This document shows, one piece after another, positions 4,047 to 64,000 of a DNA stretch of 64,000 nucleotides. The stretch comes from Calcarisporiella thermophila CBS 279.70. Taxonomy: Eukaryota > Fungi > Calcarisporiellomycota. Numbering within the stretch: the stretch's first letter is position 1; each line of letters opens with the position of its first letter. The translations under genes were made by a program, and so were the position numbers. The DNA lies in assembly GCF_041956535.1 (NCBI RefSeq), contig NW_027192224.1:165136-229135 (forward strand), written 5' to 3'. Below the pieces are notes generated by a model. The model had not been told where the DNA came from. It searched no databases and was given only the letters and a program-made list of their open reading frames with translations.

Positions 4047-4363
4047 TTGACATATCATTAGTCTATTATGCTTCTTCCATATATCTATATATTATCCACC
4101 TCTATACATAGAGCTCGCTTCTTTTGCATTGCCTGTATACTCGTCTTTTCACTATCTTCTAACGGCTCCTCCATCGGAAGAGGGACCTTGTAACATAGTA
4201 ATTTGGCCACGCTTTCATGCCACCTCTTTCCTCGGATGATTTATGGGTGAATTTCTCATGCATTCACACCTTTGCACTCAAAATAAAGTCTTCGGTGATA
4301 ATAGGAAAAATAAACAATATCCCAAGAAATACATGTCTATAAAGTCGAAGCGAAAAAAAAAGT

Positions 4364-6640
4364 CTATTTGCCACCCTCAACCTCGTCATTGCTTGCTCTA
4401 TCATCATCCAGAGTGCTCTCCTTTTTCGTCTTGGGCTCCGCGGATCCTCTTTCCCCTCCACCCATCTTACTGATCCACGATGCAACCTCCGCTTTTGTCA
4501 CCACCTCCTTACGGCTACTCTCCTGCCTTCGTTGCTCTTCCTTTCCATGACTCTTCTCCTCTTCTTCAAGCTCCTCTAGGATCCCTGCTTGCGTTAACAC
4601 CACATCAGCCACCACGGTCGGATCCTGACCGCCCTCTACGATGCGCGAAATAATCTCATTAATTACATCTGGGGGAACTTGCCCCTCTTGAAAAAGTGCA
4701 TTTATTCTGTCTTTTCTGTCCTCTGGCTCCTCCTCTTTTGCTTTCTTTTCGCCCTCCTGCTCTTCCTTCTCTCTAACGCTCTCCTCAGCGGTATTATCAC
4801 TGGAAATCACGCCCCTGGTTTTTTCCACGCCCCACCTTTTTTCCGCCTCTGCGATCTCATCGTCGACCACGATGGCACCACTCTTCACCCATTCCTCCAC
4901 AGCCTCCACCGCCACTCGAGGGTTCTGCTTGAAGTTCATCAGATATCCTTGCAATGAAGCCATGGAGAATTTTTCGTCCGGGATCTTTTCGGCAAAAGTA
5001 TCGGCAAGGAGCGGGTCAGGCAACTCAGGATAGAATCGGCGGAATAGTGCACCAGCCTGAGTAGAGGTGGCATTGGTAAAGTGGATTCGAACATCTATGC
5101 GGCCAGGCCGGATCAGAGCCGGGTCAAGACGCTCAATATGGCTAAGGAGGGGGGGAATTTAAACAAGTGAGTGGAAGGGTGGAGAAAGAAGATAAAGCTT
5201 AAGAAACACCAAAAAGTGGATGGGAATGTTACTTTGTCGTCATGCATAGAATGCGCCCCTCTTGGGCCATAATACCATCAATTGCATTAAGTAGACCTAA
5301 AGTCAAGCATTTCGTAAGAAGGGACGGATCCAAGCAATAAAACATCCACCGCTCACCCGAGAAAGTCAGGCCCTTCTGCCGCTCATTGCCCACTCTCCGT
5401 ACGAATGCCGAATCCACATCTTCCATCAACAAGATACAACGACCTGGAGTCTCATTCACCAAGTCATTTATGGTCTCGTCCGTGACCCCGCGGCTCGCCA
5501 AATTCACCATGTAGATATTCAGATTGAGTACGCCTGCCAACGCGAAGATAAAGGAGGTCTTTCCGGAGCCTGGGTTGCCATAAAATAGGTATCCCCTTCG
5601 ATAGGGAATGCCCCGTTCGGCATACCATTCCTCGGAATCCAGGAAATTTCTCGCATCCTTGATTACGTATTCTTTGACGTTGGGGTCTAAAATGACTGAA
5701 TCCATCGGCCGTTTTGCAATCCTGTTGGCGGTATTTCTGGGCCGTTTCCAGTGGCCAAACTGGTCGGAGCCAAATACCACCGTGCGGTCCAGGTCTTTGG
5801 CAAGGAACTTGGACTGGGCCTCGCGCACAATAGAGAGCATCAGATCACGCGAAACAGCCAGGACCGAGATGGTGATGGTCTCGATAGGGATTTGAACTGG
5901 TCCTTGATTGGAGTTATGCCGAAGATGGGTCTGATCGGAAGTGTGAAAGTTGAGCCAGAGCGGCTGCCCACGATAGAAGGTAAAATGGGTCCCTAGACCA
6001 TGCAGTCAAGGGTTAGGGTTGGATGTTGTAGTGACAAAAGGGTAGGGAGAAGGGAAGAAAAGCATAAGAGAGGAAACAGAAGGTGCTATTACCTGGTGCT
6101 GGAAGGAAAAACAGCTGCGGGACGGTGGTATCCAGGTTCTTTCTAAAGAAAGGAAGTCAGCTTCGAGTATGGGGTTGACAACATCTCCGCTAACTTACTC
6201 AAAAATAGGCTCTCCTCGGGTTAACGATGTCGACACCCTAAACTGCATTGCCTTCGCAAATGCAGGCTGTTCCACAAGCCAATTCAGAATATAACTGAAT
6301 GCTTCATCTCGACTATCAAACACTATATTCAAATTCATGAACATCAGTTACCAAAAAAATGCACATAGCTCTCCATTTCAGTAGACCAAGGGAATGCATG
6401 TTAGCGCTTCTTACCAGCCCGAGAGACGAATCGCTTATTGAGCCAATCCGTTATTATATTGCCTAGTGTTCTGAAAAAGGCCAAGACAACTCCGACCACA
6501 AAGAGCTCCACCCCAAGAGAATAGAGATGGCCATGCAAGCTGCTGGCGATGTTTTGCACTATAGCCGAGGATTTCCATTGCATGGGCTGCATGAATATGG
6601 ATGTTAGCCTTGGAACGCCGTATGGTTTCGGATGGTCCAT
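4364..6640 (-). CDS. BCS1-like AAA ATPase, multi-exon, with acidic C-terminal extension
   Basis: WYAERGIPYRRGYLFYGNPGSGKTS (Walker A), LLMEDVD (Walker B), LTFSG/LLNAIDG, and HIERLDPALIRPGRID in the exon near 5090-5140; SMASLQGYL. Start at 6640 is the best guess. Confidence 0.88.
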
Positions 6641-7837
6641 CGTTGTAATGGAAGTGAGAACTCCAGTATTTCCGCGGTAACAAGCAAAGTGTTGCGATGG
6701 AGTTGAATAGAGTTATATGCGAACCCATATTGTCAAAAAAAAAGAGAAGGTGCAACGCTCCTGTGGAACCGTGACCAAAAACTCGTCCTATTTCTGAGTA
6801 CAAAGGAGGTGAATATTTCTTTTTACTATTGCTTCCTGCCCTTCGCTATTTCCATAGATTCTCGCATTTTACTTTTTGTTTGACCGCCACCTTATTTGTC
6901 AGATTCTTGTCTTTCTTCTCCTGCAACAATACATGGATCCTTATTTTAGAGTGTTCAATCTATGGTATTCTTCATGGTAAGCGTTAAAATTCACCTAAGG
7001 GGTAATTTTGAAGTAGCGCGGGTGACCATGGCTGGTGATGACTATAAATGGAATACATCGTGGCAATGCGACTAAACCATTTTTGGAAATCGCTTATTTT
7101 AACCAACCAAGAATACCTTTTCAACCTTGCTGAAACTGATAGATTCTTACAAGAGGTTTTCCATCGTCTGTATTTCAAAAAAAAAAATACGCGTTCAAAG
7201 GCCGCAGTTTAAGAACTAGGTTCAGATATTTAAATTGGCATCGTAAGAATCATATGCAAATTTTGAATTACTCAAGCACCTACCCATCGCATCCCGCTGG
7301 TTTTCTCTGATTCTAAGTCTGAGAAATAAAACATGTACTGGAGTAAGTGGCAAGAAAAAAAAATCCTCCAAGGATTACATATTATGTTGGACGGGTAGGA
7401 GATTATCATGAGGTAAGTAAGATGCGTCATACAATTAGAAGAGCACGTCATACTCCGCCTCAACTCCTCCATAGTACCCAAATTATATTTCGATGTTGAG
7501 ACCATAACGAGATTGTTTTCATAAGTTCAACAAATATGCTCAAGTATGGTTCATCCCCAAGCTAGGATGATCGTCGAGCTGTCTCTCGTCACCATATTGA
7601 CTCTACGTCTGGGAAGAAATTTCGTGAGAACCAACTGAACACATCCATGTATATGCTGAAATGCCGGGCTGCACTATGTGTAAGGTTAGCTCAAGGCTGG
7701 GTTTGGGATGTGTAAATTACATAAACCAAGATGACATGCCTCAAAATTTCTCCGTATATATTCTACTGATACACTCCTTATTTCCCCTTAATCAACACAC
7801 TATAGGAGAGCGTCTACGGCTACGGATGCTAACTGGA

Positions 7838-52006: not shown

Positions 52007-52591
52007 CGTCACTGCTCAAGAGATTGGGGATGTGGTGTGTAGTGTGTGGATGAGACGGAATTAGTGGAGATGCGCGATCACCGCTGCTGACATGAACATC
52101 CACGTTCGACAGGCTCCTCGACCGGCTGGAAGTTCCTGGCTATCTGCGGAGACGCGGGGCGAGGGGGCGTGGGAGTGCGTGGGGGTGGGAGGCGCGGGTG
52201 TGGTGGTAAACAACAGAGGCAATCGCGATGAGCAGCGCTGCGGGGAGGCAGCTATGAACACGACAGACTATGAGGCAGAGAGAGGGAAGAGAGGGGATGG
52301 GGGGAAGAGAGGAAATAGGGAAGTTATATATGCAGGCTGCAGCGTAATGCTTCTTTTTGCAAAGGAAATCACATAAGAAAGAAAATAAAAATAAAAAACT
52401 GCTGCGCTCGCGGCCGGCTTCGAAGACTTTCCCCCCCCCTCGCCGCTCGCCAACTTAAAACAGCAAGGGGTCTTAATTAGAAGGCCGGCTGGAAAAAAAG
52501 GAGCAATGGAAACAAAACAGGTTGTTTTTGTGCATATTGAATCGCCTTATAAGGTCAAATCGCTGCACTCTTCCTCATATATGGCTGGCAA

Positions 52592-53295
52592 ATTGGTTCG
52601 CTCTCGCCCCCCCATTATTAAGCGAGCGCAAATGTGATTCACGGCCTTATGCGGAAACTATTGCGCTGGTTTCACTCTCTTTTGTCATTGTTTTCCGAGC
52701 TGCCCAAGCGCGCCTGCCCTTCTGGGGCCTGGCGCCGCCCGCCATTGGCCGCTCCGAGCCTCAGGGTGGGACAGCGGCCTGCTGCGCCGCGCCCCTCCTG
52801 GCCCTGCCCCGTGTCTCTCCACCGCGCGGGTCCTGCACCACCCTGTGCGCGCGCGCAAGGGCCCCGCAGGGCCCGCCGCCCGCGCGCGCGGTGGCAGCGG
52901 CGGTGACAGGCCCCACACTTCCGAGTGCGTCTGGCGCCAGGCCGACAGCCTGCGAGGAGGAGACGGCGGGTGGAGCTTAATGGCCCGCCCCTGGCGCAAA
53001 TCCCTTCCCTTTCCGGCCGGCTTGTGCAGCAGCCCGTGACATACACGGCGATATTGCATGGGCGATGCGCAGGGTGCAGCCTTGTGCGCCCTCTTCGCCA
53101 GCCCGCGCGCCGCTGACTGGCTCCAGGCCCGCAACGGATCACCAACCAGCAGCGGCCCCCTCATGCCTGCCCCCCCCTTGCGAGCCCCCGAGCTCGAGAT
53201 TGGCGCGGCTGCGCGCAGGCCGCGTCGCCATTGGCCGCGCCCACACGGCCAAGCGGAGAGGCGCTGCGCCCCCTGGCCCGCCCCCCGCCCATTGG
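52592..53295 (-). promoter_or_regulatory. Five co-oriented CCAAT boxes in a GC-rich divergent promoter
   Basis: ATTGG at 52592, 52744, 53199, 53230 and 53291 between the StuA-like and Num1-like starts. Confidence 0.4.
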
Positions 53296-53717
53296 CCGGC
53301 CCTTTTCCCTTTTGGCGCGATCCGCTCTCGCGCCTTTTCTTTTCCGGCCTTTGTTTATGCTTTATTGCTGTCATTTACCGTCGGCCTGGTTAGGACACAA
53401 ATGCCCACAAACTCAGCAAGAGGGGAAAAAAAAAAAATCCTCCAAACTCGTTTTGCTGACGGGCCGGCCCAAAAGCGAACGTCAACGCGCCAAATACCGA
53501 CTCCAACCGGCGAGCGCTGCCTTTTTCTGACCGCGTCGAACCCCCAAGCTGCGAAAAAAACCTCCAATCCCCCCATTTATTGCCCGGCCGAAAATCTCCC
53601 CTCATCGCGCCTTTTATCCCGCGCCTGTTCCGAATCCTGGCCTCCTTTTTCCCTTGCATCCCCTCGCCTTCCCCGCATCCCTAATCGCTAGACCCGCCGC
53701 CTTGAGGCATTCTGGAA

Positions 53718-56401
53718 ATGGCTGAAGCTGAGGTCTTCGTAGCATCCACCACCCCGACTTCGCGAGGCCCGGACATTTTTCTAACCCGGCCCGCGCCACC
53801 CCGTAGGCGCGTCACCGGCCCCGACGGCGAATCCCGCCCGCAATCGACCGAGGCCCTCCTCGTCCAGCTCCAGCGCTCGCAGGCCATGTGCGACGAGCGC
53901 AGCGCCCGGATCAAGCAGCTCGAGGCGCGCATCACCGAGCTGGAGACGCTGCTGGACGCCCACAATGCCCAGTTCCGCCAGAAGGAACAGACTGAATGTA
54001 GCGTATTTTCTCGTGCTGATGCCATGAACGAACACGGGCTCTAACCCCGCGTGTTTCCTCCCCTTTGTAGCAAAGCTCCGAGAGGAATGCTGGAATCTCG
54101 AGCTCTCCATCCAGGACCTTCGCAGCCAGCTCGAAGCGGCCGCCCAGTCCGCCACGCGCCACCAGAACGACCAAATTCGGTGGCGCGAGCTGGTCGCGGC
54201 CGCGGCGGAGCAGGTCGAGCAGCTCCGCTCTGAAAACGAGGGCCTCCTCGCCAAGCAGGCCGACGCGAAAACCCAGGCGGAACAGGAGAGCGCCGCCCAC
54301 AGGCGGCAGCTGGCCGCGCTGCAGCGCGAGAACAAAAACCTGGTCCAGCAGATGCAGGAGCTGGTCGCCGAGCTGGAGGGCCTGCGTCACAAGGCTCGCA
54401 TTGCGCAGAGACCGCGGTCCAAGCAATCCGCCGCCGCCGCCGCAACCATCCTGCCCCCGGAGGATGCGCCCGCTGGAGCCACGGGCTCAGAGCTGGAAAT
54501 CGATTTCGCGGATCATGCTGCGCTCGACCGGCCGCGCGGTGAGCCCCTTGGAATGCTCCGGGACCACGCCGGGTCTCCGCGCGAAAGCCCAAGCCCCAGA
54601 TCAAGCACGAGGGCGAGACGGAGAGGCTTCGGGGTCCGGTTCGGCGGGAAGAAATCGGTCCGCGCGAAGAAAGCCGGCGCCCACGGTGGAGAGGAGGGCA
54701 CGGGCGAAGTGCCGGCGCCAGAGGAGAAGCCGCACCCGCAGCGACGCCCCAACGCGGACTCCCAGCTGGAGGACGAGGACGCCCTCTCTGACGAGGACGA
54801 AAATGGGCTGGACTCGCGGCTGCTGCCTCCCCTGACCGAGTACGACGCCATGCTCTCCGCCGGCGATTTCATTGCCAACAGTCTTTTTGCAGAGCTCTCC
54901 GCGCTCAACCACGCCTCCCCGCTCGTCTCCCCCCCCTCCGACTTCTCGTCTTCCACCGCCGAATCGCGCGCCGACTCTCCCCTCAAGCCGGAAACCTCCG
55001 AAACTAGAGGCGTGCCCAAGGAGGAGAGCGCCAGCACCCTTCTCGGCCTGACCTCTCTCCTGTCGCAGACGGGACCTTCGGGTGCAACCGCCCCGGCCGA
55101 GAAAAACCCCGGAGGCGCCCAAGAGTTCGCTGAGACAAATCGGAGGGCTGTCTCCGCACCCGTCGCCCCCGCGGGCTCGACGCAAGCCACACGGCCCCCC
55201 TCAGAAGCAAAGGGAAGAGGGGGGAGGGCGCAGCGTGCAACGGATGAGACATCGGAGATTTCCTCCTCGAGGGCTTCGCAGGGTAAAGCGGAGGCCGCTA
55301 GCGACAAAGAGACTTCATCCCGTAAGAAGCAGCCGCATCGGTCTCAACCCTCCCTGGCGAGCACAACCCGGCGCTCGAAATCCTCATCCAGCGAAAGCCT
55401 GAGGCACAGAGAGGCCTCCGCCCTGCCCGAGTCCCTTCGGATCCCGTTTGACCTGCCCGCCTCCAAGCCTTCTCGGGCACTGGTGTTACGCCGTACCGAA
55501 TCCACCGATAGGGTGTCCTCCCTGCACAACCCCCCTCCCTCCTCTGACCACTCCAAGTCAAAACCTGCCGCTTTAACCACCCCAGCCACCACGTCGCCGT
55601 CCACCACCTCCCTCTCCTCCTCCTCCGCCTCCGCTTCCTCCTCCGTCCCCGCCTACCCTCCCCACAAACGGTATGCTTCGGGCAAGCGGCCCAAAGAGCC
55701 GGCTCGGGCCCCCGCGGCCCACCGCGGCCCAAGAGACCACTTCATTGCGGTGCCCAACTTCGTGCCCGTTCCCGTCCCGATGAAGTCCAGGATACTCCCC
55801 GGGAAAAACAGGGCGAAAAAGCAAGAGAATCCGCCGCCAGTGCCCCCCGCGCCCGTGGATAAGAGCATCCTCGCCGCCATCACGGCAACCATGATGGGCG
55901 AGTTTCTGTGGAAATACATGCGCAAGCTTGGAGGAGGACCGTCCGAGAAGCGGCACCAGAGATTCGTGTGGGTGCACCCCTACATGCGCACCATTTATTG
56001 GAGCGCAAAGCGACCCGGCGTTGTCGGATCGGCGGAAGCGAAAGCCAAAAGTGGTAATGTCTCTTTCCACGTCTACGATGGCGATTTCCTCCTTGGGTTG
56101 GACCTGAGACTAACAAGTCCCCATGTATCACTCTCCTTCTTTTTTTCCCCCAGCCTTCATCGAGTCCGCCTACGCCGTCCCCGGCTATCCGCAGCAAAAC
56201 CCCGATCTTCCGCATGTCTGCTTGATCGTGCGCACGCCCCAACGCGAGCTCAAATTCATTGCCGCGTCTCGCGAGCGCCACGACATTTGGATGCGATCCC
56301 TCACGTATCTTCTTTCGCGCCCCTGGGTCTCGTCTTCTGCAGCATCACTACCCCTCCGGCTGGAGAATCAGACAAGCGTCTCGAAAAGAGCTGAGGGCTA
56401 A
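53718..56401 (+). CDS. Num1/ApsA/Mcp5-like cortical protein (coiled coil + Mcp5-type PH domain), 3 exons
   Basis: N-terminal coiled coil; AAITATMMGEFLWKYMRK..KRHQRFVWVHPYMRTIYWS..TPQRELKFIAASRERHDIWMRSLTYL. Confidence 0.85.
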
Positions 56402-57216: not shown

Positions 57217-58022
57217 TCATCGCCTCTTCTTGAAAATCTCAACGTGCTTTTGCAAGCGCTCCCACTCGGGTGTAGTTGCTTTGACGCTGGGACGCGATCG
57301 AAGCGCCCGCCCATACGCATTGACGCGCTCGTATTCTTCCGTCTCTGGAATCTCAAAACCAATCTCTTGAACCAGAGGAAACCGCGCAAAGAATGGAGCC
57401 ACCGCAATGTCCGCATAGGTCAATTCCTCACCCAGGAGGAATGGTCCATCGGATTGTTTCACGAGGAAGTCGTTAATCTCACGTAACCCCTTGAGGAACT
57501 GTTCGTACTCCTCTACGCCGGCGGAAAAGGCTTTGAAGAAATGGGGCAACACCCTCTCGAAAAGTCCCAAGAACAATCGAGATTGAGCACGGGCGAGAGG
57601 ATCTTGGACCTGAATGCTGTGGAAGAATCGCGGTGAGATAATTGATCAACACTCTGCTCGTGTGCTACTCATTAGCCCATTTCCATCCTCACCTTGTATT
57701 GTTCCCATACTTTTCCAACAAATACTCTAAAATAATAAGCGACTCAACGATGGTCTCCTCGCCTACCTTGAGCGCGGGGACTTTTCCTTCGGGGTGTACT
57801 TTGAAATACCTAAGTGAAATCGAAATTTGAATATCACATTGATATGGGCAATCTTCTTTACCACTCTATATAGAATGGGCCTTACCACTCAGGCTTGTTG
57901 GAGAGATCGATGGGAACGGTCTCATCCGGAACGACGCCGAGTTCTTGTAGCGCGATAGCTGCGCGCTGGCAGAATGGACACTCGTGTGATGTGTAGAAGA
58001 CAAGGCTTTGGTTGGAAGACAT
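57217..58022 (-). CDS. Cys-type glutathione transferase (omega/DHAR-like, CPFC motif), 3 exons
   Basis: YTSHECPFCQRAAIAL..IDLSNKPEW|YFKVHPEGKVPAL..IVESLIILEYL; C-domain GPFLLGEELTYADIAVAPFFAR. Confidence 0.9.
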
Positions 58023-60055
58023 AGTGCAGGCGAGGTGCCAATGGGTGGTTATGGATGCTTATTCGGATGAATTGGCCTTGCCTAGGACACTATATGTCCT
58101 TTTTATAGAGGGCATCGGAAAGACTTTCAAAATATATCATCCAGCATTAATAAGCAAACGTGGTTATCTCGTACTCCGAATTTCAACCCGATACAATAGT
58201 AATCTGATGCTTCCCTCTTCCTCGAGATGAATAAGTAACCCTATTTCACACTCATAGAAGGAGAGGTGGACAAGATGAAGCTGGGCAATGTGGAGCTTGC
58301 TATTGGCTATGTTAAACTACCGATGTTGGATTAATATACCATAAAGAGAAGGGATGAATCATCCTTGTGGTTACTACCCCCATAAATATCTAGGACGGAT
58401 ATACATTATTGCGGAAAAATGAATCCATCCGCTCATTGAGCTTTCTCGATATTCCATCAAGTATTAGTGTTCGATTTGGATCTAACAAAATGGACTTTTA
58501 CACAGAGAAACGATTTGTATTGTTAAACGCTGGTTTTTTTATGGATGTTACTAACAATTTATGTTTGTGGTCATAACAATATCAAGGCACAGAGAATGTA
58601 CGGTGGGGTAGCTTCAACTCATTATTTCTTATTATTAATATTAAATTTCCAAACAGAGTGCTTAAATATCAACTTATGTTGACATGCGCATATTCATAGG
58701 CTCATGAATAGGTTGGTATTTAAGCATAGATAGGAGATGCTTTGTAAACCTCTGCTGGATATCACTATTTTCAGTGCAGTGCACGACAGCTCATGTATGG
58801 CCCGGCGAGGATTCAAGTGGCAATTTTTTTCATGCACGCATAGCTTTTCTCGCCAACTGCACAAACCCAGCTTATGCATTTGGTAAGACATTTATTCATC
58901 TGTGGCTCATTAGCTGCCTGGAAGACAAATGTGGCGAATTTTAGCAGTCTCCCATTGATTCTAGTTCAATTGGAATTAGTCTACAATGAACGCACTTCTC
59001 GTCTCTGTATTCCTGAATGCCAGCTTAAACTAATCAATAAAGACAAAACTATTTTACATCAGAAGATATCATCCTGACGAATTGCTTCTTTTTTTTATTA
59101 ATCTCAATCCACAAACTTCATAAGGAAACTTCCACTGAGTTTTTTTCAGCCTGGTCCTGCCTTGGGTGCTTAAGTCGTTACATACTAGAAAAATCCACCA
59201 ACCTCAACACGTGTGTGTGGATGCCCGCTTTATCGCAACTACATGATTTATACCTGAAAGGTCGATCTCAACCACGCTCTTAGTTCGGAAAGCTTGGTTA
59301 AAGTAAATCTTTTTATCTGATTTATTCGCAACTACCCAGGTTCCCATTTCTTGAGTTTCGATTTCAATTATTCAAAGTATCATTGCTTCTTCATTAAATA
59401 AACACTCACCAGACTCTTTGTTGAGTTACTAGAACGAATTTGCGGCTAGAGGCCAGAAAAAAATATTGGAGAATAGATAATGAAATTCAGAATATTGAAT
59501 CGTAACCGCATTTTAATAATGGTACGAGGAAAATATTGTCACTGACATTTGCCAGCTTAGAACGTATGTTGATTATGTTTATGTGTTATTCTTTACAAGT
59601 AAAGAGATGATAAATTGAGAAATATCCAAGATTAATATTAAAAGCGGGTACATGATTTGGAATATCTTCCTAAATCTTTCGGATGGTAATGAGCCAAGCT
59701 CTTTTAAAGTGGAAGCGCTGTCATCTAATCGAGGTTTTCAATAGGCATGAGCGACGCAAATAATGCTGTTAGTATAGAGTCTTTCCCACATGCCGTTGAC
59801 TATCTACTACCTTATCATTGCTTATTAACAAGCTTGTTAATATGAAGTGGAAGTGTTCGCCTTTTAATCGGATATATTCGAGGCCTTTCTTGGCCCTTAA
59901 CTTAGTTCGCTTTTACATAGGTAGTTTGGATTTCTATAAGAAACATTATAGAATAGATTACTGTAAAAAGCATCTTATACTAGACTCTATCTATCCATTA
60001 TTTTAAACATTTACAAAAAGCCAGGTGGCAAACAATGATAGAAATCCTCATATAC

Positions 60056-60421
60056 TCAAATGAATGGAATAGCGGGCATAGCTCCTCCACGAACATATGG
60101 AGTAAAATCCATATATTCTGCATCTTGGATAGAAACTCGAATACTTATAAGGTGAGGATCCCCACTTGGAGACTGGCCGTTTATCCACGGTAAATTACGA
60201 ATACGGCCAAGATGAAGTAACACAAGCATAAGCTGGCACCCCTCTTGACGCCGAAACATACTCTGCTGAACTCGTATATACCCAAACTCGGAGAGGAGAG
60301 AGGCAATTTCTTTATAATGTTGGACATGCGAGCCGTACGATTCAATTAGGGCCCTGCGTCCTAGGTCGTACTGAATTATCCAATGTCCAAAACTCACAAG
60401 ACTTTCTCTAACAGCTTGCAT
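60056..60421 (-). CDS. VapD/Cas2-like ferredoxin-fold nuclease homologue, copy 1 (intronless, 121 aa)
   Basis: WIIQYDL (hhhhYD with the catalytic-position Asp19), L..SYG..HY.EI..LL..FGYIRVQQSMF (Cas2 RVQxSVF / VapD GFxxxQGSVY), LPW..SIRV..MDFTPYV (VapD W..DIR..DFT). Recognised by eye. Confidence 0.78.
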   Translation of the reverse strand: MQAVRESLVSFGHWIIQYDLGRRALIESYGSHVQHYKEIASLLSEFGYIRVQQSMFRRQEGCQLMLVLLHLGRIRNLPWINGQSPSGDPHLISIRVSIQDAEYMDFTPYVRGGAMPAIPFI

Positions 60422-60975
60422 TTTGTTAATTTTATGTATTTGAAGAAGTTGACACTAATATGAAACCAGGTTGAGCTTTATTGAACCTATGCTGATTTAA
60501 CTCAAAGCTTTTATACAGCAAATACAATACAATATTTGCTGTCATTAGATTACAACATGAAAATGAATGAAGCAATCCTTTCTATTTCATATGAAAAGCG
60601 TACATATATCAAACAAAGAGATGATGCTAAATTTGAGACCATAATGATCTAGGAAGGGATGTTATATTTCTTGTCCCATATCCCCTGTGTGCCTTGTCCA
60701 AAGAGAGGTAAGTGCAATAGTGGGTCCTTTGTAACACTTTAATAGCCCACAAACGATTTATCAAATATTATTCACCTAGCTTTGTGTTGTTATGAATTTA
60801 ATCTGTTAGGTTATAGTTATATCTATCTCCTTTGTTTCTTAACATGACGAATTGAATATTTCATGAAGCCACATCAATTAGGTTTAAGAATATGAAAAAT
60901 CTGATATATACGTAAGAATGAGTCGTCCCGAGAAGCCAACCAAAGCAACTCCCAATTCATTTCTATACAAAAACA

Positions 60976-61976
60976 ATGTCGGAAGAAAATACTCCTCTGG
61001 ACATCGAGTATATAAGAAATCGTAGGCATTAGTTAACTCTGACTCTTTTTTTCCTCTTTTCTATCTCCTACTGAATATCTTTTGATATATTCTGATAAAC
61101 AGATTGCGAGAACATCCTTAGAGATAGTGAAGAAGTAGCACGAGTGTATTATGAGTGCATGATTACCGATAAATATGGACAAAGATACCTTGATCCTGCT
61201 AAATGTGAGACCAACAATTTCGATCCGATAAAGTAAATGGGTTGGTATTGTGATCCAGCTGAGGTACAGCTGACGTATTCTATAATAGAGCTTGTAATGA
61301 CCAAGTTACGAGGATGAAGCTAATAGCCAAGTATTGCAGCGATATTAGTAGGATGTATGATTGGCGTGAAGCAGACAGATTGATATTATCGCTTATGTAA
61401 GTAAGCAATAACTCATATATTATTGATATATGGAGGGTGGAGTGAGAGTCATCTTGCCTCTTTAGACCAGAGAAATATCAGAAAAAACAAACCGGGCGCT
61501 CTTCAAAGGCCCCCTATATTCCGAAGCAGTCTCATATGCGTGTTGAAAAGCGATCACAAAACGTAAAGAATTCAGGGTTGATTTTAGAGACATATTACCA
61601 CATACTCCCATATACAATCATTGCAGAAAATTATTTCCTCCGTTTCCAGTGCAGCTCAACGTATCATCCCGAAGAAAGTCCAAAAGCGCAGCGGAAAGCA
61701 ATCGAAGAGAGTAAGTAGTGAACATCTAATTCGGACTTTATCTGTCATGACTGGTTGAGTATCATTTTGGCACTCTTGCAGGAGGCTCTTTCTATGCTCT
61801 GCAAGGCAGGCCAACTCGTCGGATGTGAAGTCAACATCGGCGATACCTATGCTAAAGTGATTGCCGCTAAAATGACTGAGGACTCTGTCCTGGTGGAAGT
61901 GAAGGAGGAGGTAGAGGAAGGTGTCTGGGATCAGTATGAGATCGAGTATAATATAAATATGAAACCGCTTCATTGA
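60976..61976 (+). CDS. Six-exon orphan protein (219 aa), divergent from VapD-like copy 1
   Basis: Exons 60976-61021, 61103-61232, 61289-61396, 61466-61562, 61627-61710 and 61782-61976 total 660 nt. All five introns are GT-AG and keep the frame open to TGA. Confidence 0.78.
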
Positions 61977-62794
61977 ACAAAGTGCAGAAATTAACCAATG
62001 AATATACATTGAATACAATACGTGTTATCAGTAGGTCAAATTAGACAAATAAATGCATCAATATTTTTCTACCTTTTTCTTAAAGTATATAAATTAGACC
62101 GAGATTCTTTTTGTCAATCAAAGGGAACTCTATTATAGCTAGTGACCTAAGTATTGCCATAGGTTGGTTCCAATGGAAAGCGTAGGGAAGGTTAATACTA
62201 GAACTGAGTACTGAAGGGAGAAACGGAATCTAAATTCACTCCAGTGAAATGGAAGAACAACAAATCTAGCCTCTGAAACTGTAGAACATATTTGGTTATA
62301 GAAGAAGCTTGGACTCATTTTGTAGCATTTTATTTTTTAGAATCCATATGTGAATATCAAAAATATTTTGTAGTGAGAAGCTAACACGAGTTTCCATCCA
62401 TCATCTTCGATAGTTTAACATATGATTGTATATACTCTGCTTGATTCGTACACATTTGGCGAGGAATGCGACAATGACCCTCTAGAATAGTGAAATGGGC
62501 AACATGTAATGGCCAAATCACATTGCCCAAGGTCATATTTTATTATCCAATGACTTACATTAATAAAACTTTTTCTAAAGGCTTACACTTTGTTCATTAT
62601 ATAAATAACAAAAAATGCGCGGACAGAGTAATTGTGTTGACTCTATGTTACCTCTTAATCATTATTGCCACAATTTAATTAAAATCGATTAGGTTAAGTT
62701 TAAGATAATGAAAATTTGGTATATATATATAAGTATGACTTGTCTCGAATATTCAAAAAAATTAAACACCTGAAATTATTATCAAGCAAACACA

Positions 62795-63042
62795 ATGTCA
62801 GTGGAATATACCAGTCTAGACGTAGAGTTTCTAAAAAAATCGTCTGCATTAGGAAATTTTATAACTTATAGCATCTTTTAATATATTCTATCTTCTACTT
62901 TTACTGAAAAGCCTATAACATACTTCGATTAAAAAGATGCATGAGCCTCGTTAGGGGGAATGAAGAATCAGCTCGGGTATATTATGAGTGCATGTGCACT
63001 AACAAATATGGACAAACGTATCTCGATCCTGAAAAAGGCTAG
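62795..63042 (+). pseudogene. Truncated paralogue of the 60976-61976 orphan
   Basis: MSVEYTSLDVEFLKK|..EESARVYYECMCTNKYGQTYLDPEKG* versus MSEENTPLDIEYIRN|..EEVARVYYECMITDKYGQRYLDPAKCE. TAG at 63040-63042 replaces GAG; exons 3-6 not recognisable. Confidence 0.8.
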
Positions 63043-63579
63043 GCTAACAGAAATATAAGTTTCATGCCTTCTCTACTTCCCAAAAAATATCGTTTATCCT
63101 TTATTTTGTACTGATAAAAATACCATTGGAGATTATGACGAAGCAAGAGTATATGAATTTTACTTTGATTATTCATAAAGTTGATATGCTTGCTACTCTC
63201 TCCCTTTTAACAAGCTAGCAAAATATAGGCGAGTTTAGATTTTATCATGTACAAAAGAGAGGAATTTTACTACTTACACAAATATATGAAGTAAATTACA
63301 TGTACTCAACCTCTTGAATGGAAGGAGTGGAATTCGAATCCATTTAATTGAATTTGGAAGGCAGCATTTAATCAACTTTATAGCACACCTTTAGTAATAC
63401 AAGCACCTGGCGATTTATTTTGCAGGTTATTGTAAAGTATTATTCTTAGATGCGCATCTCAAAAAATTTGTAACATCGAGCTAATAAATGGTTCTAACCG
63501 TTATTATATGCTTAACTTTCTCTGCCGAAAAAGCAAAATATTGGTAACCAACGGAGGCTTGTCGAGTCCCTTGTCATGC

Positions 63580-63945
63580 TCATAAGAGAGGAATAAAAGG
63601 CAATTCGCCACCACGTACATAATCTGTGAAATCCATAAATTCTGCATCTTGTATAGAGACTCGGATACTTCTTATATGGGGATCACCACTCGGAGATTGA
63701 CTCCTCACCCACGGTAAGATCCGGATATAAGAAAGTATACCCAGCACTTCAAAGAGATTGCAACTGTTTTGTTGTCGGAATATACTTTGCTGGATTCGAA
63801 AAAATCCGGCTTCAGACATGATAGTGGCGAGTTCTGTGTAATATTGAATATGTGAACCATATGAATCGATTAGGGCTCTTCGCCCTAGATCATATTGGAT
63901 GATCCAGTGGCCAAATCGAAAGAGACCCTCTCTGACAGCCTGCAT
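63580..63945 (-). CDS. VapD/Cas2-like nuclease homologue, copy 2 (intronless, 121 aa)
   Basis: Ungapped paralogue of copy 1 (82/121 identical by hand count); retains WIIQYDL, GFFRIQQSIF, LPW, SIRV and DFT. Confidence 0.78.
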   Translation of the reverse strand: MQAVREGLFRFGHWIIQYDLGRRALIDSYGSHIQYYTELATIMSEAGFFRIQQSIFRQQNSCNLFEVLGILSYIRILPWVRSQSPSGDPHIRSIRVSIQDAEFMDFTDYVRGGELPFIPLL

Positions 63946-64000
63946 TATATTCTTTTATGAGTTCAAAAGAAAATCAAGAGCAAAATACCTGTGAAAGTAT

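Follow-up and report, generated by a model that had tools for sequence, protein, structure and literature searches.

To our knowledge, every characterised nuclease of the VapD/Cas2 superfamily and every characterised SH3-like antitoxin is prokaryotic, and the locus described here raises the question of whether a fungus, Calcarisporiella thermophila (phylum Calcarisporiellomycota according to NCBI), carries a functional gene of this kind. The window that we analysed, a stretch of 64,000 nucleotides, belongs to contig 34 of this genome, and a reading of its sequence alone had picked out, close to its end, an intronless gene for a VapD/Cas2-fold nuclease that had probably been acquired by horizontal transfer. 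We asked whether this open reading frame (ORF), hereafter copy A, belongs to the VapD family, whether it stands alone, how far its relatives are spread and which role and origin explain it best (coordinates in Table 1).

Table 1. Positions, within the window, of the VapD-like genes, the partner gene and their remnants
Feature	Position	Strand	Basis or remark
Duplicated unit (VapD-like gene + spacer + partner), ~2 kb	60045..62060		blastn of the window tail against other copies
VapD-like gene, copy A	60056..60421	minus	ATG-to-stop ORF, 121 codons + stop, no intron
Ser54 codon AGT, beta2-beta3 turn	60260..60262	minus	counterpart of the VapD catalytic Ser
Asp19 codon GAC	60365..60367	minus	counterpart of catalytic Asp7 of H. 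influenzae and H. pylori VapD
Spacer between divergent start codons, 554 bp	60422..60975		presumed shared bidirectional promoter (inferred)
Partner gene, copy A, six exons, 219 codons	60976..61976	plus	four-copy comparison
Partner exons	60976-61021, 61103-61232, 61289-61396, 61466-61562, 61627-61710, 61782-61976	plus	five introns, all GT-AG
Partner exon 6: helix, then small SH3-like beta-barrel	61782..61976	plus	AF2 model
VapD-like 5' end remnant, ~20 codons	62523..62602	minus	tblastn + blastn self-matches
Partner remnant: upstream region, exon 1, part of exon 2	62684..63049	plus	67% self-match to 60878-61216 + matches to other copies
VapD-like gene, copy B, intact, 121 codons	63580..63945	minus	68% amino-acid identity to copy A; Asp19 and Ser54 kept

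Relationship of copy A to the VapD family

All the motifs that the sequence-only reading had listed (WIIQYDL, ALIESYG..HYKEIASLL, GYIRVQQSMF, LPW, SIRV and DFTPYV) are present in the translation of copy A. Searched on its own, this ORF gave weak, consistent matches, and only to the VapD/Cas2 group: NCBIfam VapD (E 0.002, 18.5 bits), TIGR cas2 (E 0.008), Pfam CRISPR_Cas2 (E 0.01, 16.5 bits against a threshold of 23.8), the H. influenzae VapD chains of the PDB (E 0.02) and several PADLOC Cas2 models. No homologues were found by a word-index protein search with the ORF. A six-frame search of the fungus's own genome (28.2 Mb, 116 contigs) was far richer, with family matches in 21 places distributed over at least nine contigs. 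Six of these places hold an intact ORF, each of exactly 121 codons (two in the window, at 60056 and 63580, one on each of contigs 2, 18 and 110, and one at position 237138 of contig 34); all others, among them about eight broken copies, show stops, frameshifts or truncations. The intact copies share 64-73% amino-acid identity with copy A.

Using these six paralogues as a profile, H. influenzae VapD was matched with an E-value of 7e-6, residues 14-111 of the profile aligning with residues 4-93 of the 102 of that protein. An 11-member profile, in which one cluster mate and four intact relatives from metagenomes joined the six paralogues, matched all six distinct VapD sequences of the PDB (E 3.7e-6 to 4.3e-3), with C. 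jejuni (9kan) at 3.7e-6, H. influenzae at 3e-5, H. pylori (3ui3) at 2.4e-4 and Xylella (5dyr) at 4e-3, and matched Cas2 chains only with E 0.26 or worse. The NCBIfam VapD model recognised 6/6 paralogues (best E 1e-5), and the best score in the genome, 26 bits, missed the equivalog cut-off of 100 bits for that model; scores this far under the cut-off mark the family, at the level of sequence, as a distant branch and not as an equivalog of bacterial VapD.

Structure prediction led to the same group of proteins. The AF2 model of copy A (pLDDT 91.2, pTM 0.84) retrieved only VapD structures at ranks 1-10 of a Foldseek search, with probabilities of 0.99-1.00, and VIA comparisons with VapD gave Z scores of 10.6, 9.9, 9.7 and 9.3 (rmsd 2.0-2.6 Å over 74-85 residues), above those with Cas2 (8.2 at most). 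The predicted fold of the copy A protein is the VapD ferredoxin-like fold. Profiles, AlphaFold, Foldseek and VIA thus agree with the initial assignment to the VapD/Cas2 fold, VapD fitting better than Cas2, and the search for a ferredoxin-like match returned VapD by profile and by structure alike. Altogether, we read the family as a divergent eukaryotic branch of VapD within the Cas2 superfamily.

The activity of VapD depends on an Asp in beta1 and on a Ser in the turn between beta2 and beta3 (PMC3351183; PMC11980593), this catalytic Ser being numbered S43 in one study (PMC3351183) and S46 in the other, where D11 and S46 are the two residues in C. jejuni VapD (PMC11980593). In HMMER alignments, the IQYDL segment of the fungal family stands opposite IAFDL of H. 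influenzae VapD (6zi0) and opposite IAFNL in the entry of its D7N mutant (6zi1), so that the aligned Asp is the catalytic one that was mutated there; in the profile alignments, RIQQS stands opposite RTQGS (6zi0) and RQYSG (9kan). The placement of Asp19 and Ser54 at the VapD Asp and Ser positions, first proposed from the sequence alone, is therefore borne out by these alignments, and both residues are invariant in 11/11 aligned members, as are L25 and the C-terminal motif. A second acidic residue, D76 at the start of beta4 in H. pylori HP0315, has no conserved counterpart (His90 in copy A, Tyr or Thr elsewhere), if its counterpart is taken from the Asp of the H. influenzae RDIR segment by HMMER, in a loop where the alignment is uncertain. 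The C-terminal tail is strongly conserved (V110, R111, G112, G113, P116, I118 and P119), which hints that the protein may form the strand-exchange dimer of VapD. More likely than not, the copy A protein is an active nuclease.

Divergence among the paralogues is high at synonymous sites (pS 0.40-0.83, with 0.16 for the closest pair) and much lower at non-synonymous sites (pN 0.10-0.25). Since synonymous sites are saturated while few replacements have accumulated, we infer purifying selection on a protein that has been kept over a long time, and the copy A ORF is very probably a VapD-family gene under selection. One stretch of the protein stands out. Between the two closest paralogues (contig 110 and copy B), 15/48 non-synonymous sites are changed within residues 56-76, compared to 14/233 in the rest of the protein (Fisher p 5e-6), synonymous changes being not enriched there in the same way, and pN/pS exceeds 1 in this segment, a ratio that by itself is not significant. 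These residues run into helix alpha2, and this replacement hotspot may be a surface that sets pairing specificity. The family also differs from its surroundings in composition, with a GC3 of 0.30-0.37 compared with 0.5-0.75 for most other long open frames of the window, which served as a proxy for host exons; the GC content of the partner gene described below was computed on concatenated in-frame exon DNA.

A collection of 15 billion proteins lacks all six intact ORFs, so they are apparently unannotated. The annotated family member that we encountered in C. thermophila (KAL1914105.1 / XP_069245394.1, P0002 in our searches) is a 79-residue model of a pseudogene on contig 107, in which a false intron skips the part with a TGA codon and a frameshift. 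The consequence is an annotation gap, in which six intact genes are missing from protein collections and a pseudogene copy is "rescued" by a false intron.

A two-gene unit, its copies and its distribution

The sequence-only reading had described a lone gene, and this has to be revised: the actual unit is a two-gene module of ~2 kb. The similarity between copies at the DNA level extends from 60045 to ~62060 and so includes another gene, which is encoded on the plus strand; the unit as a whole has 76-77% identity with its counterparts on contigs 2 and 3. Several blocks of the spacer are conserved in the alignment of the window copy with the copies of contigs 2, 3 and 32. The reading frame of the partner gene is kept in the copies of contigs 2 and 3, with a dN/dS of 0.18-0.38 and a divergence of 0.13-0.26 in the introns. 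The contrast that had been drawn between an intronless ORF and intron-bearing neighbours holds for the immediate neighbour itself, copy A having no intron and the partner five. From these sequence comparisons, the VapD-like gene appears as the fixed half of a conserved two-gene module.

Scanned one by one, the partner exons matched no Pfam or PADLOC model. The 64 residues of exon 6, predicted by AF2 from a 7-sequence alignment, gave a confident fold (pLDDT 91.0), whose best Foldseek matches were the KOW domains of EF-P/eIF5A and Tudor domains, at E 0.14 or higher, and whose neighbours in a wide VIA search were SH3-like barrels of the KOW, Tudor, Sm and chromo types (top Z 6.6). VapX and VapY, the bacterial antitoxins of VapD, are SH3-like barrels as well (PMC11980593), and the VapX chain 6zn8_F was found at rank 32 of this search (Z 5.3, rmsd 2.6 Å, 56/62 residues), among unrelated barrels that score 5-6.6. 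A profile of exon 6 had no significant match to any solved chain among the PDB sequences, VapX included. Since this fold is common and sequence similarity is absent, the parallel between exon 6 and VapX is suggestive and not specific. A complex prediction with two VapD-like chains and the exon-6 domain scored 0.00, a result that weighs neither way.

The module lies in an AT-rich block that begins at ~58 kb of the window (33-40% GC) and is preceded by DNA of 63-74% GC at 52.5-56 kb. Between pair A and copy B lie remnants of both genes (Table 1), and the partner of copy B, which is located past the end of the window (contig 34, 230486-231323), is interrupted by a stop in exon 5 and by a break of the frame in exon 6. 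From there the cluster continues to the end of the contig with further intact and broken copies, the contig ending inside another partner copy; neither contig 34 nor contig 18 was found to end in telomere repeats. The two halves of the module are not always in the same condition. Both are intact in pair A and in the pair of contig 2, and apparently also at position 237138 of contig 34, while pair B combines an intact nuclease gene with a broken partner; on contig 3 the nuclease gene is broken and all six partner exons are open, and on contig 1 it is broken next to open partner exons 2-6, exon 1 being undetected. The module has thus multiplied and decayed repeatedly within the C. thermophila genome. 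The contigs that carry copies reach 1.7 Mb, and copies are found inside contigs of 1.3-1.7 Mb beside spliced genes. With copies of the gene on so many large contigs of C. thermophila, beside intron-bearing genes, contamination is unlikely, as the sequence-only reading had also concluded from the fungal character of the contig.

Outside this genome, the family is rare. An exhaustive search of 1.84 billion representative proteins with the family profile returned only 18 matches at E <= 1e-3. Those with a named fungal source come from Calcarisporiella and from Glomeromycotina, namely Rhizophagus irregularis, R. clarus, Funneliformis mosseae, F. caledonium and F. geosporum; the remaining ones come from metagenomes, one being labelled VapD in IMG, and the only non-fungal matches are longer bacterial proteins, at E ~6e-4. 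All Glomeromycotina copies that were inspected are pseudogenes annotated with shortened models, either spliced or stopped early. Homologues of the partner exons are again arranged head-to-head with the VapD-like gene in F. caledonium (exon 2 at E 2e-6 and exon 6 at E 7e-8, in an annotated gene of 190 residues), in R. clarus (E 1.7e-12 and 1e-6, annotated gene of 168 residues) and on one metagenome contig (L032, E 6e-9). The bacterial matches sit on plasmid-like or conjugative contigs with Rep, PcfJ, ParA/ParB and sortase genes. When the family alignment was used for pattern scans, no relatives turned up in viral or metagenome contigs. A maximum-likelihood tree of 10 fungal-type and two bacterial sequences does no more than split the two groups, with support values of 90/84, and gives neither a donor nor a rooting.

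Possible role and origin of the module

The best overall explanation, to which we attach middling confidence, is that copy A encodes a functional nuclease of a fungal VapD branch that is part of a toxin/antidote-type module. According to this model, the VapD-like protein would dimerise in the manner of VapD, via its conserved C-terminal tail, and would cut RNA or DNA, while the partner would bind the nuclease through its barrel domain and restrain it, like the bacterial antitoxins VapX and VapY. Instead of an operon as in bacteria, the shared spacer would provide for co-expression of the two genes. An inferred nuclease restrained by an inferred inhibitor would together give toxin/antidote-type behaviour, and the pair may then be a selfish or a defensive module. 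That the partner controls the nuclease by such a logic is a possibility drawn from the bacterial analogy, and we hold it a little less firmly than the overall explanation. Finding the same pair in arbuscular mycorrhizal fungi suggests a bacterial-style toxin/antidote module in eukaryotes.

The competitor that survives best, although we consider it unlikely, is a domesticated VapD-like nuclease with an ordinary job such as RNA processing or turnover, whose neighbour merely shares a bidirectional promoter with it. About half of the bacterial VapDs have no associated antitoxin and the VapD of H. pylori stands alone (PMC11980593, PMC3351183), and the intact copy B beside its broken partner fits such a role, since strict toxin/antitoxin logic allows this configuration only with cross-protection by other partners. 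Housekeeping genes, however, seldom come in many copies with numerous pseudogenes, restricted to AT-rich repeat blocks and missing from most relatives. The pair has also been kept together head-to-head across two fungal lineages, and the replacements are concentrated in a single segment of the protein.

Somewhat less probable again is that the 2-kb pair is the cargo or the core of a mobile element, either non-autonomous or part of a larger unassembled one, and that the nuclease serves this element through addiction or integration. Many properties of the family would suit an element: its spread over at least nine contigs, together with numerous fragments and partial copies in inverted orientation, its location in AT-rich blocks at assembly breaks, its atypical GC3, its patchy distribution across fungi and the plasmid-like or conjugative surroundings of its nearest bacterial relatives. 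The copies themselves argue otherwise, as similarity fades on both sides of the unit without sharp shared ends, terminal inverted repeats occur at chance level only, no transposase or reverse-transcriptase ORF was found in the 58-64 kb region and most copies have no common flanks. The paralogues are also old, with saturated pS, showing no recent burst, and viral contigs gave nothing.

The horizontal acquisition put forward in the sequence-only reading survives in part. A prokaryotic origin is plausible because all characterised relatives are bacterial, and the source may have supplied a whole vapYD-like pair. What does not stand is a recent capture of a single gene: a family that is otherwise prokaryotic and an intronless gene with atypical codon composition speak for a bacterial or endobacterial donor, but no close bacterial homologue exists among the 1.84 billion representatives (best E 6e-4), the paralogues are deep and saturated, and Glomeromycotina share the gene along with its intron-bearing partner, so that we regard this version as very improbable. 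The transfer is ancient, or its donor is unsampled. A fuller scenario, which is tentative and rather doubtful as a whole, would be that an early-diverging fungus captured a complete VapYD/VapXD-type operon, that the antitoxin gained introns and an N-terminal domain, that the genes were turned head-to-head around a bidirectional promoter, and that the module now proliferates as a selfish toxin/antidote or as an abortive-infection-type defence in Calcarisporiella and in arbuscular mycorrhizal fungi. Least credible of all is a non-functional relic, chance ORF, assembly chimera or contaminant: many copies are broken and the intact ones went uncalled by annotators, but six ORFs have each kept exactly 121 codons despite saturated synonymous change, and copies lie inside contigs of 1.3-1.7 Mb beside spliced genes.

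We found no paper linking VapD with these fungi, and no word that starts with "fung" occurs in the 2025 census of VapD-like proteins (PMC11980593). If our model is true, a type II toxin-antitoxin architecture would have survived in eukaryotic nuclear genomes, which is rare, with its gene organisation adapted to them. It would then offer a tractable way of testing whether modules of this type are selfish elements or a form of immunity in fungi, and a marker of gene exchange between Calcarisporiella and Glomeromycotina, or of their common ancestry.

Comparison with known systems

CRISPR Cas2 belongs to the same superfamily, has the same Asp in beta1 and is matched weakly through Pfam, TIGRFAM and PADLOC models, yet it scores below VapD by sequence and by structure. 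A Cas1 model that gave detections in seven control genomes found nothing in the C. thermophila genome, and the VapD-like protein is therefore not a CRISPR Cas2. Among fungi, the toxin-antidote or meiotic-drive families Spok and wtf are small multi-copy modules that diverge rapidly and leave many dead copies, and each produces toxin and antidote from one gene. Their likeness to the VapD-like module is one of genomic behaviour alone, with no relationship in sequence or fold.

Closer relatives are found among the bacterial VapDs. H. pylori HP0315 (3ui3) has a similar fold (Z 9.7), and its residues D7, L13 and S43 correspond to D19, L25 and S54 of the fungal protein; it differs in D76, whose equivalent is not conserved in the fungi, and in standing outside any toxin-antitoxin pair. 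The C. jejuni VapD-VapW system (9kan) provides the best sequence-profile match of all (E 3.7e-6), and its gene families, too, tend to duplicate in tandem (PMC11980593). VapW is a VapD that has been inactivated, whereas 6/6 intact fungal paralogues keep the Asp and the Ser; a VapW-type dead paralogue acting as antitoxin was therefore rejected for the intact copies.

The VapXD and VapYD systems (H. influenzae, 6zi0/6zn8; Muribaculum VapYD) share several features with the fungal module. They have the ferredoxin-like fold in common (VIA Z 10.6, rmsd 2.6 Å over 82 residues), the family profile covers nearly the full VapD chain, the catalytic Asp and Ser are the same, and the gene next to the fungal nuclease is predicted to encode an SH3-like barrel, which is the fold class of VapX and VapY. 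There are differences as well: the fungal family lives in a eukaryotic host, has ~20% identity to these proteins and scores below the curated family cut-off. Around beta4 its protein carries an insertion of ~8 residues, its conserved C-terminal tail is longer, and its partner, with 219 codons and five introns, has an extra Cys-containing N-terminal part. Finally, the bacterial genes form an operon, whereas the fungal genes are arranged head-to-head, in multiple copies and with many pseudogenes.

Composition of the window and array differences

The GC content of the window drops abruptly from 63-74% (52500-56000) to 33-40% (58000-64000), with the switch taking place within about 2 kb. The VapD-like family displays a GC3 of 0.30-0.37, versus 0.5-0.75 in most of the other long open frames of the window. 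Window 61443-64000 is collinear with contig 110, except that a stretch of about 1 kb (62051-63049), which carries the truncated remnant of a VapD-like/partner pair, is missing from contig 110 (L003:38-527 compared with window 61443-63049). The two sister arrays therefore differ at this remnant by an insertion or a deletion. Another copy of the six-exon partner gene straddles the end of contig 34, to which the window belongs, and the contig stops inside that copy; no telomere repeats were found at this end (C34:239136-241882). The VapD-like/partner cluster on contig 34 is probably longer than assembled, the assembly breaking on a repeated partner copy. In the sequence used, some regions adjacent to family copies are masked as N: C34:229136-230227 and 233470-236323 (L024:1-1092 and 4335-7188), and L023:8475-10000 on contig 18; repeats or elements may separate the copies there.

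Coordinates of the VapD-like and partner features
Feature	Location	Strand	Remark
VapD-like copy B	window 63580-63945	minus	closest paralogue pair, with contig 110
VapD-like paralogue	contig 110, L003:1181-1543		closest paralogue pair, with copy B
Truncated pair remnant	window 62523-62602 and 62684-63049
Partner gene copy	contig 34 end, within L025 (C34:239136-241882)
VapD-like pseudogene	C. thermophila contig 107, L008:532-891	minus	annotated as KAL1914105.1 / XP_069245394.1, 79 residues
VapD-like pseudogene and partner	F. caledonium, within CAJVPQ010000028.1, 12841-23158 (L031)		flanked by two large genes

Annotation and divergence of the paralogues

The annotated protein of the contig-107 copy is a false-intron model, in which the intron bypasses a TGA and a frameshift of this pseudogene. 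None of the six intact paralogues was present in protein collections. When copy B was compared with its closest paralogue, residues 56-76 were enriched in amino-acid replacements (15 of 48 non-synonymous sites, versus 14 of 233 elsewhere; p = 5e-6). These residues may form a diversifying surface on helix alpha2 of the VapD-like protein.

VapD-like genes in Funneliformis caledonium and bacteria

Both genes flanking the F. caledonium pair encode more than 2300 residues, with URGCP-type GTPase and VWA domains, and this locus may lie in a variable or immune-like gene neighbourhood. In bacteria, a 253-residue protein with two VapD-like domains in tandem was observed on metagenome contigs (L033 and L034, carrying P0020/P0018). 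This tandem protein is found on at least 24 contigs. The element that carries it, either plasmid-like or conjugative, also bears Rep_ORF2-G2P, PcfJ and HTH genes.
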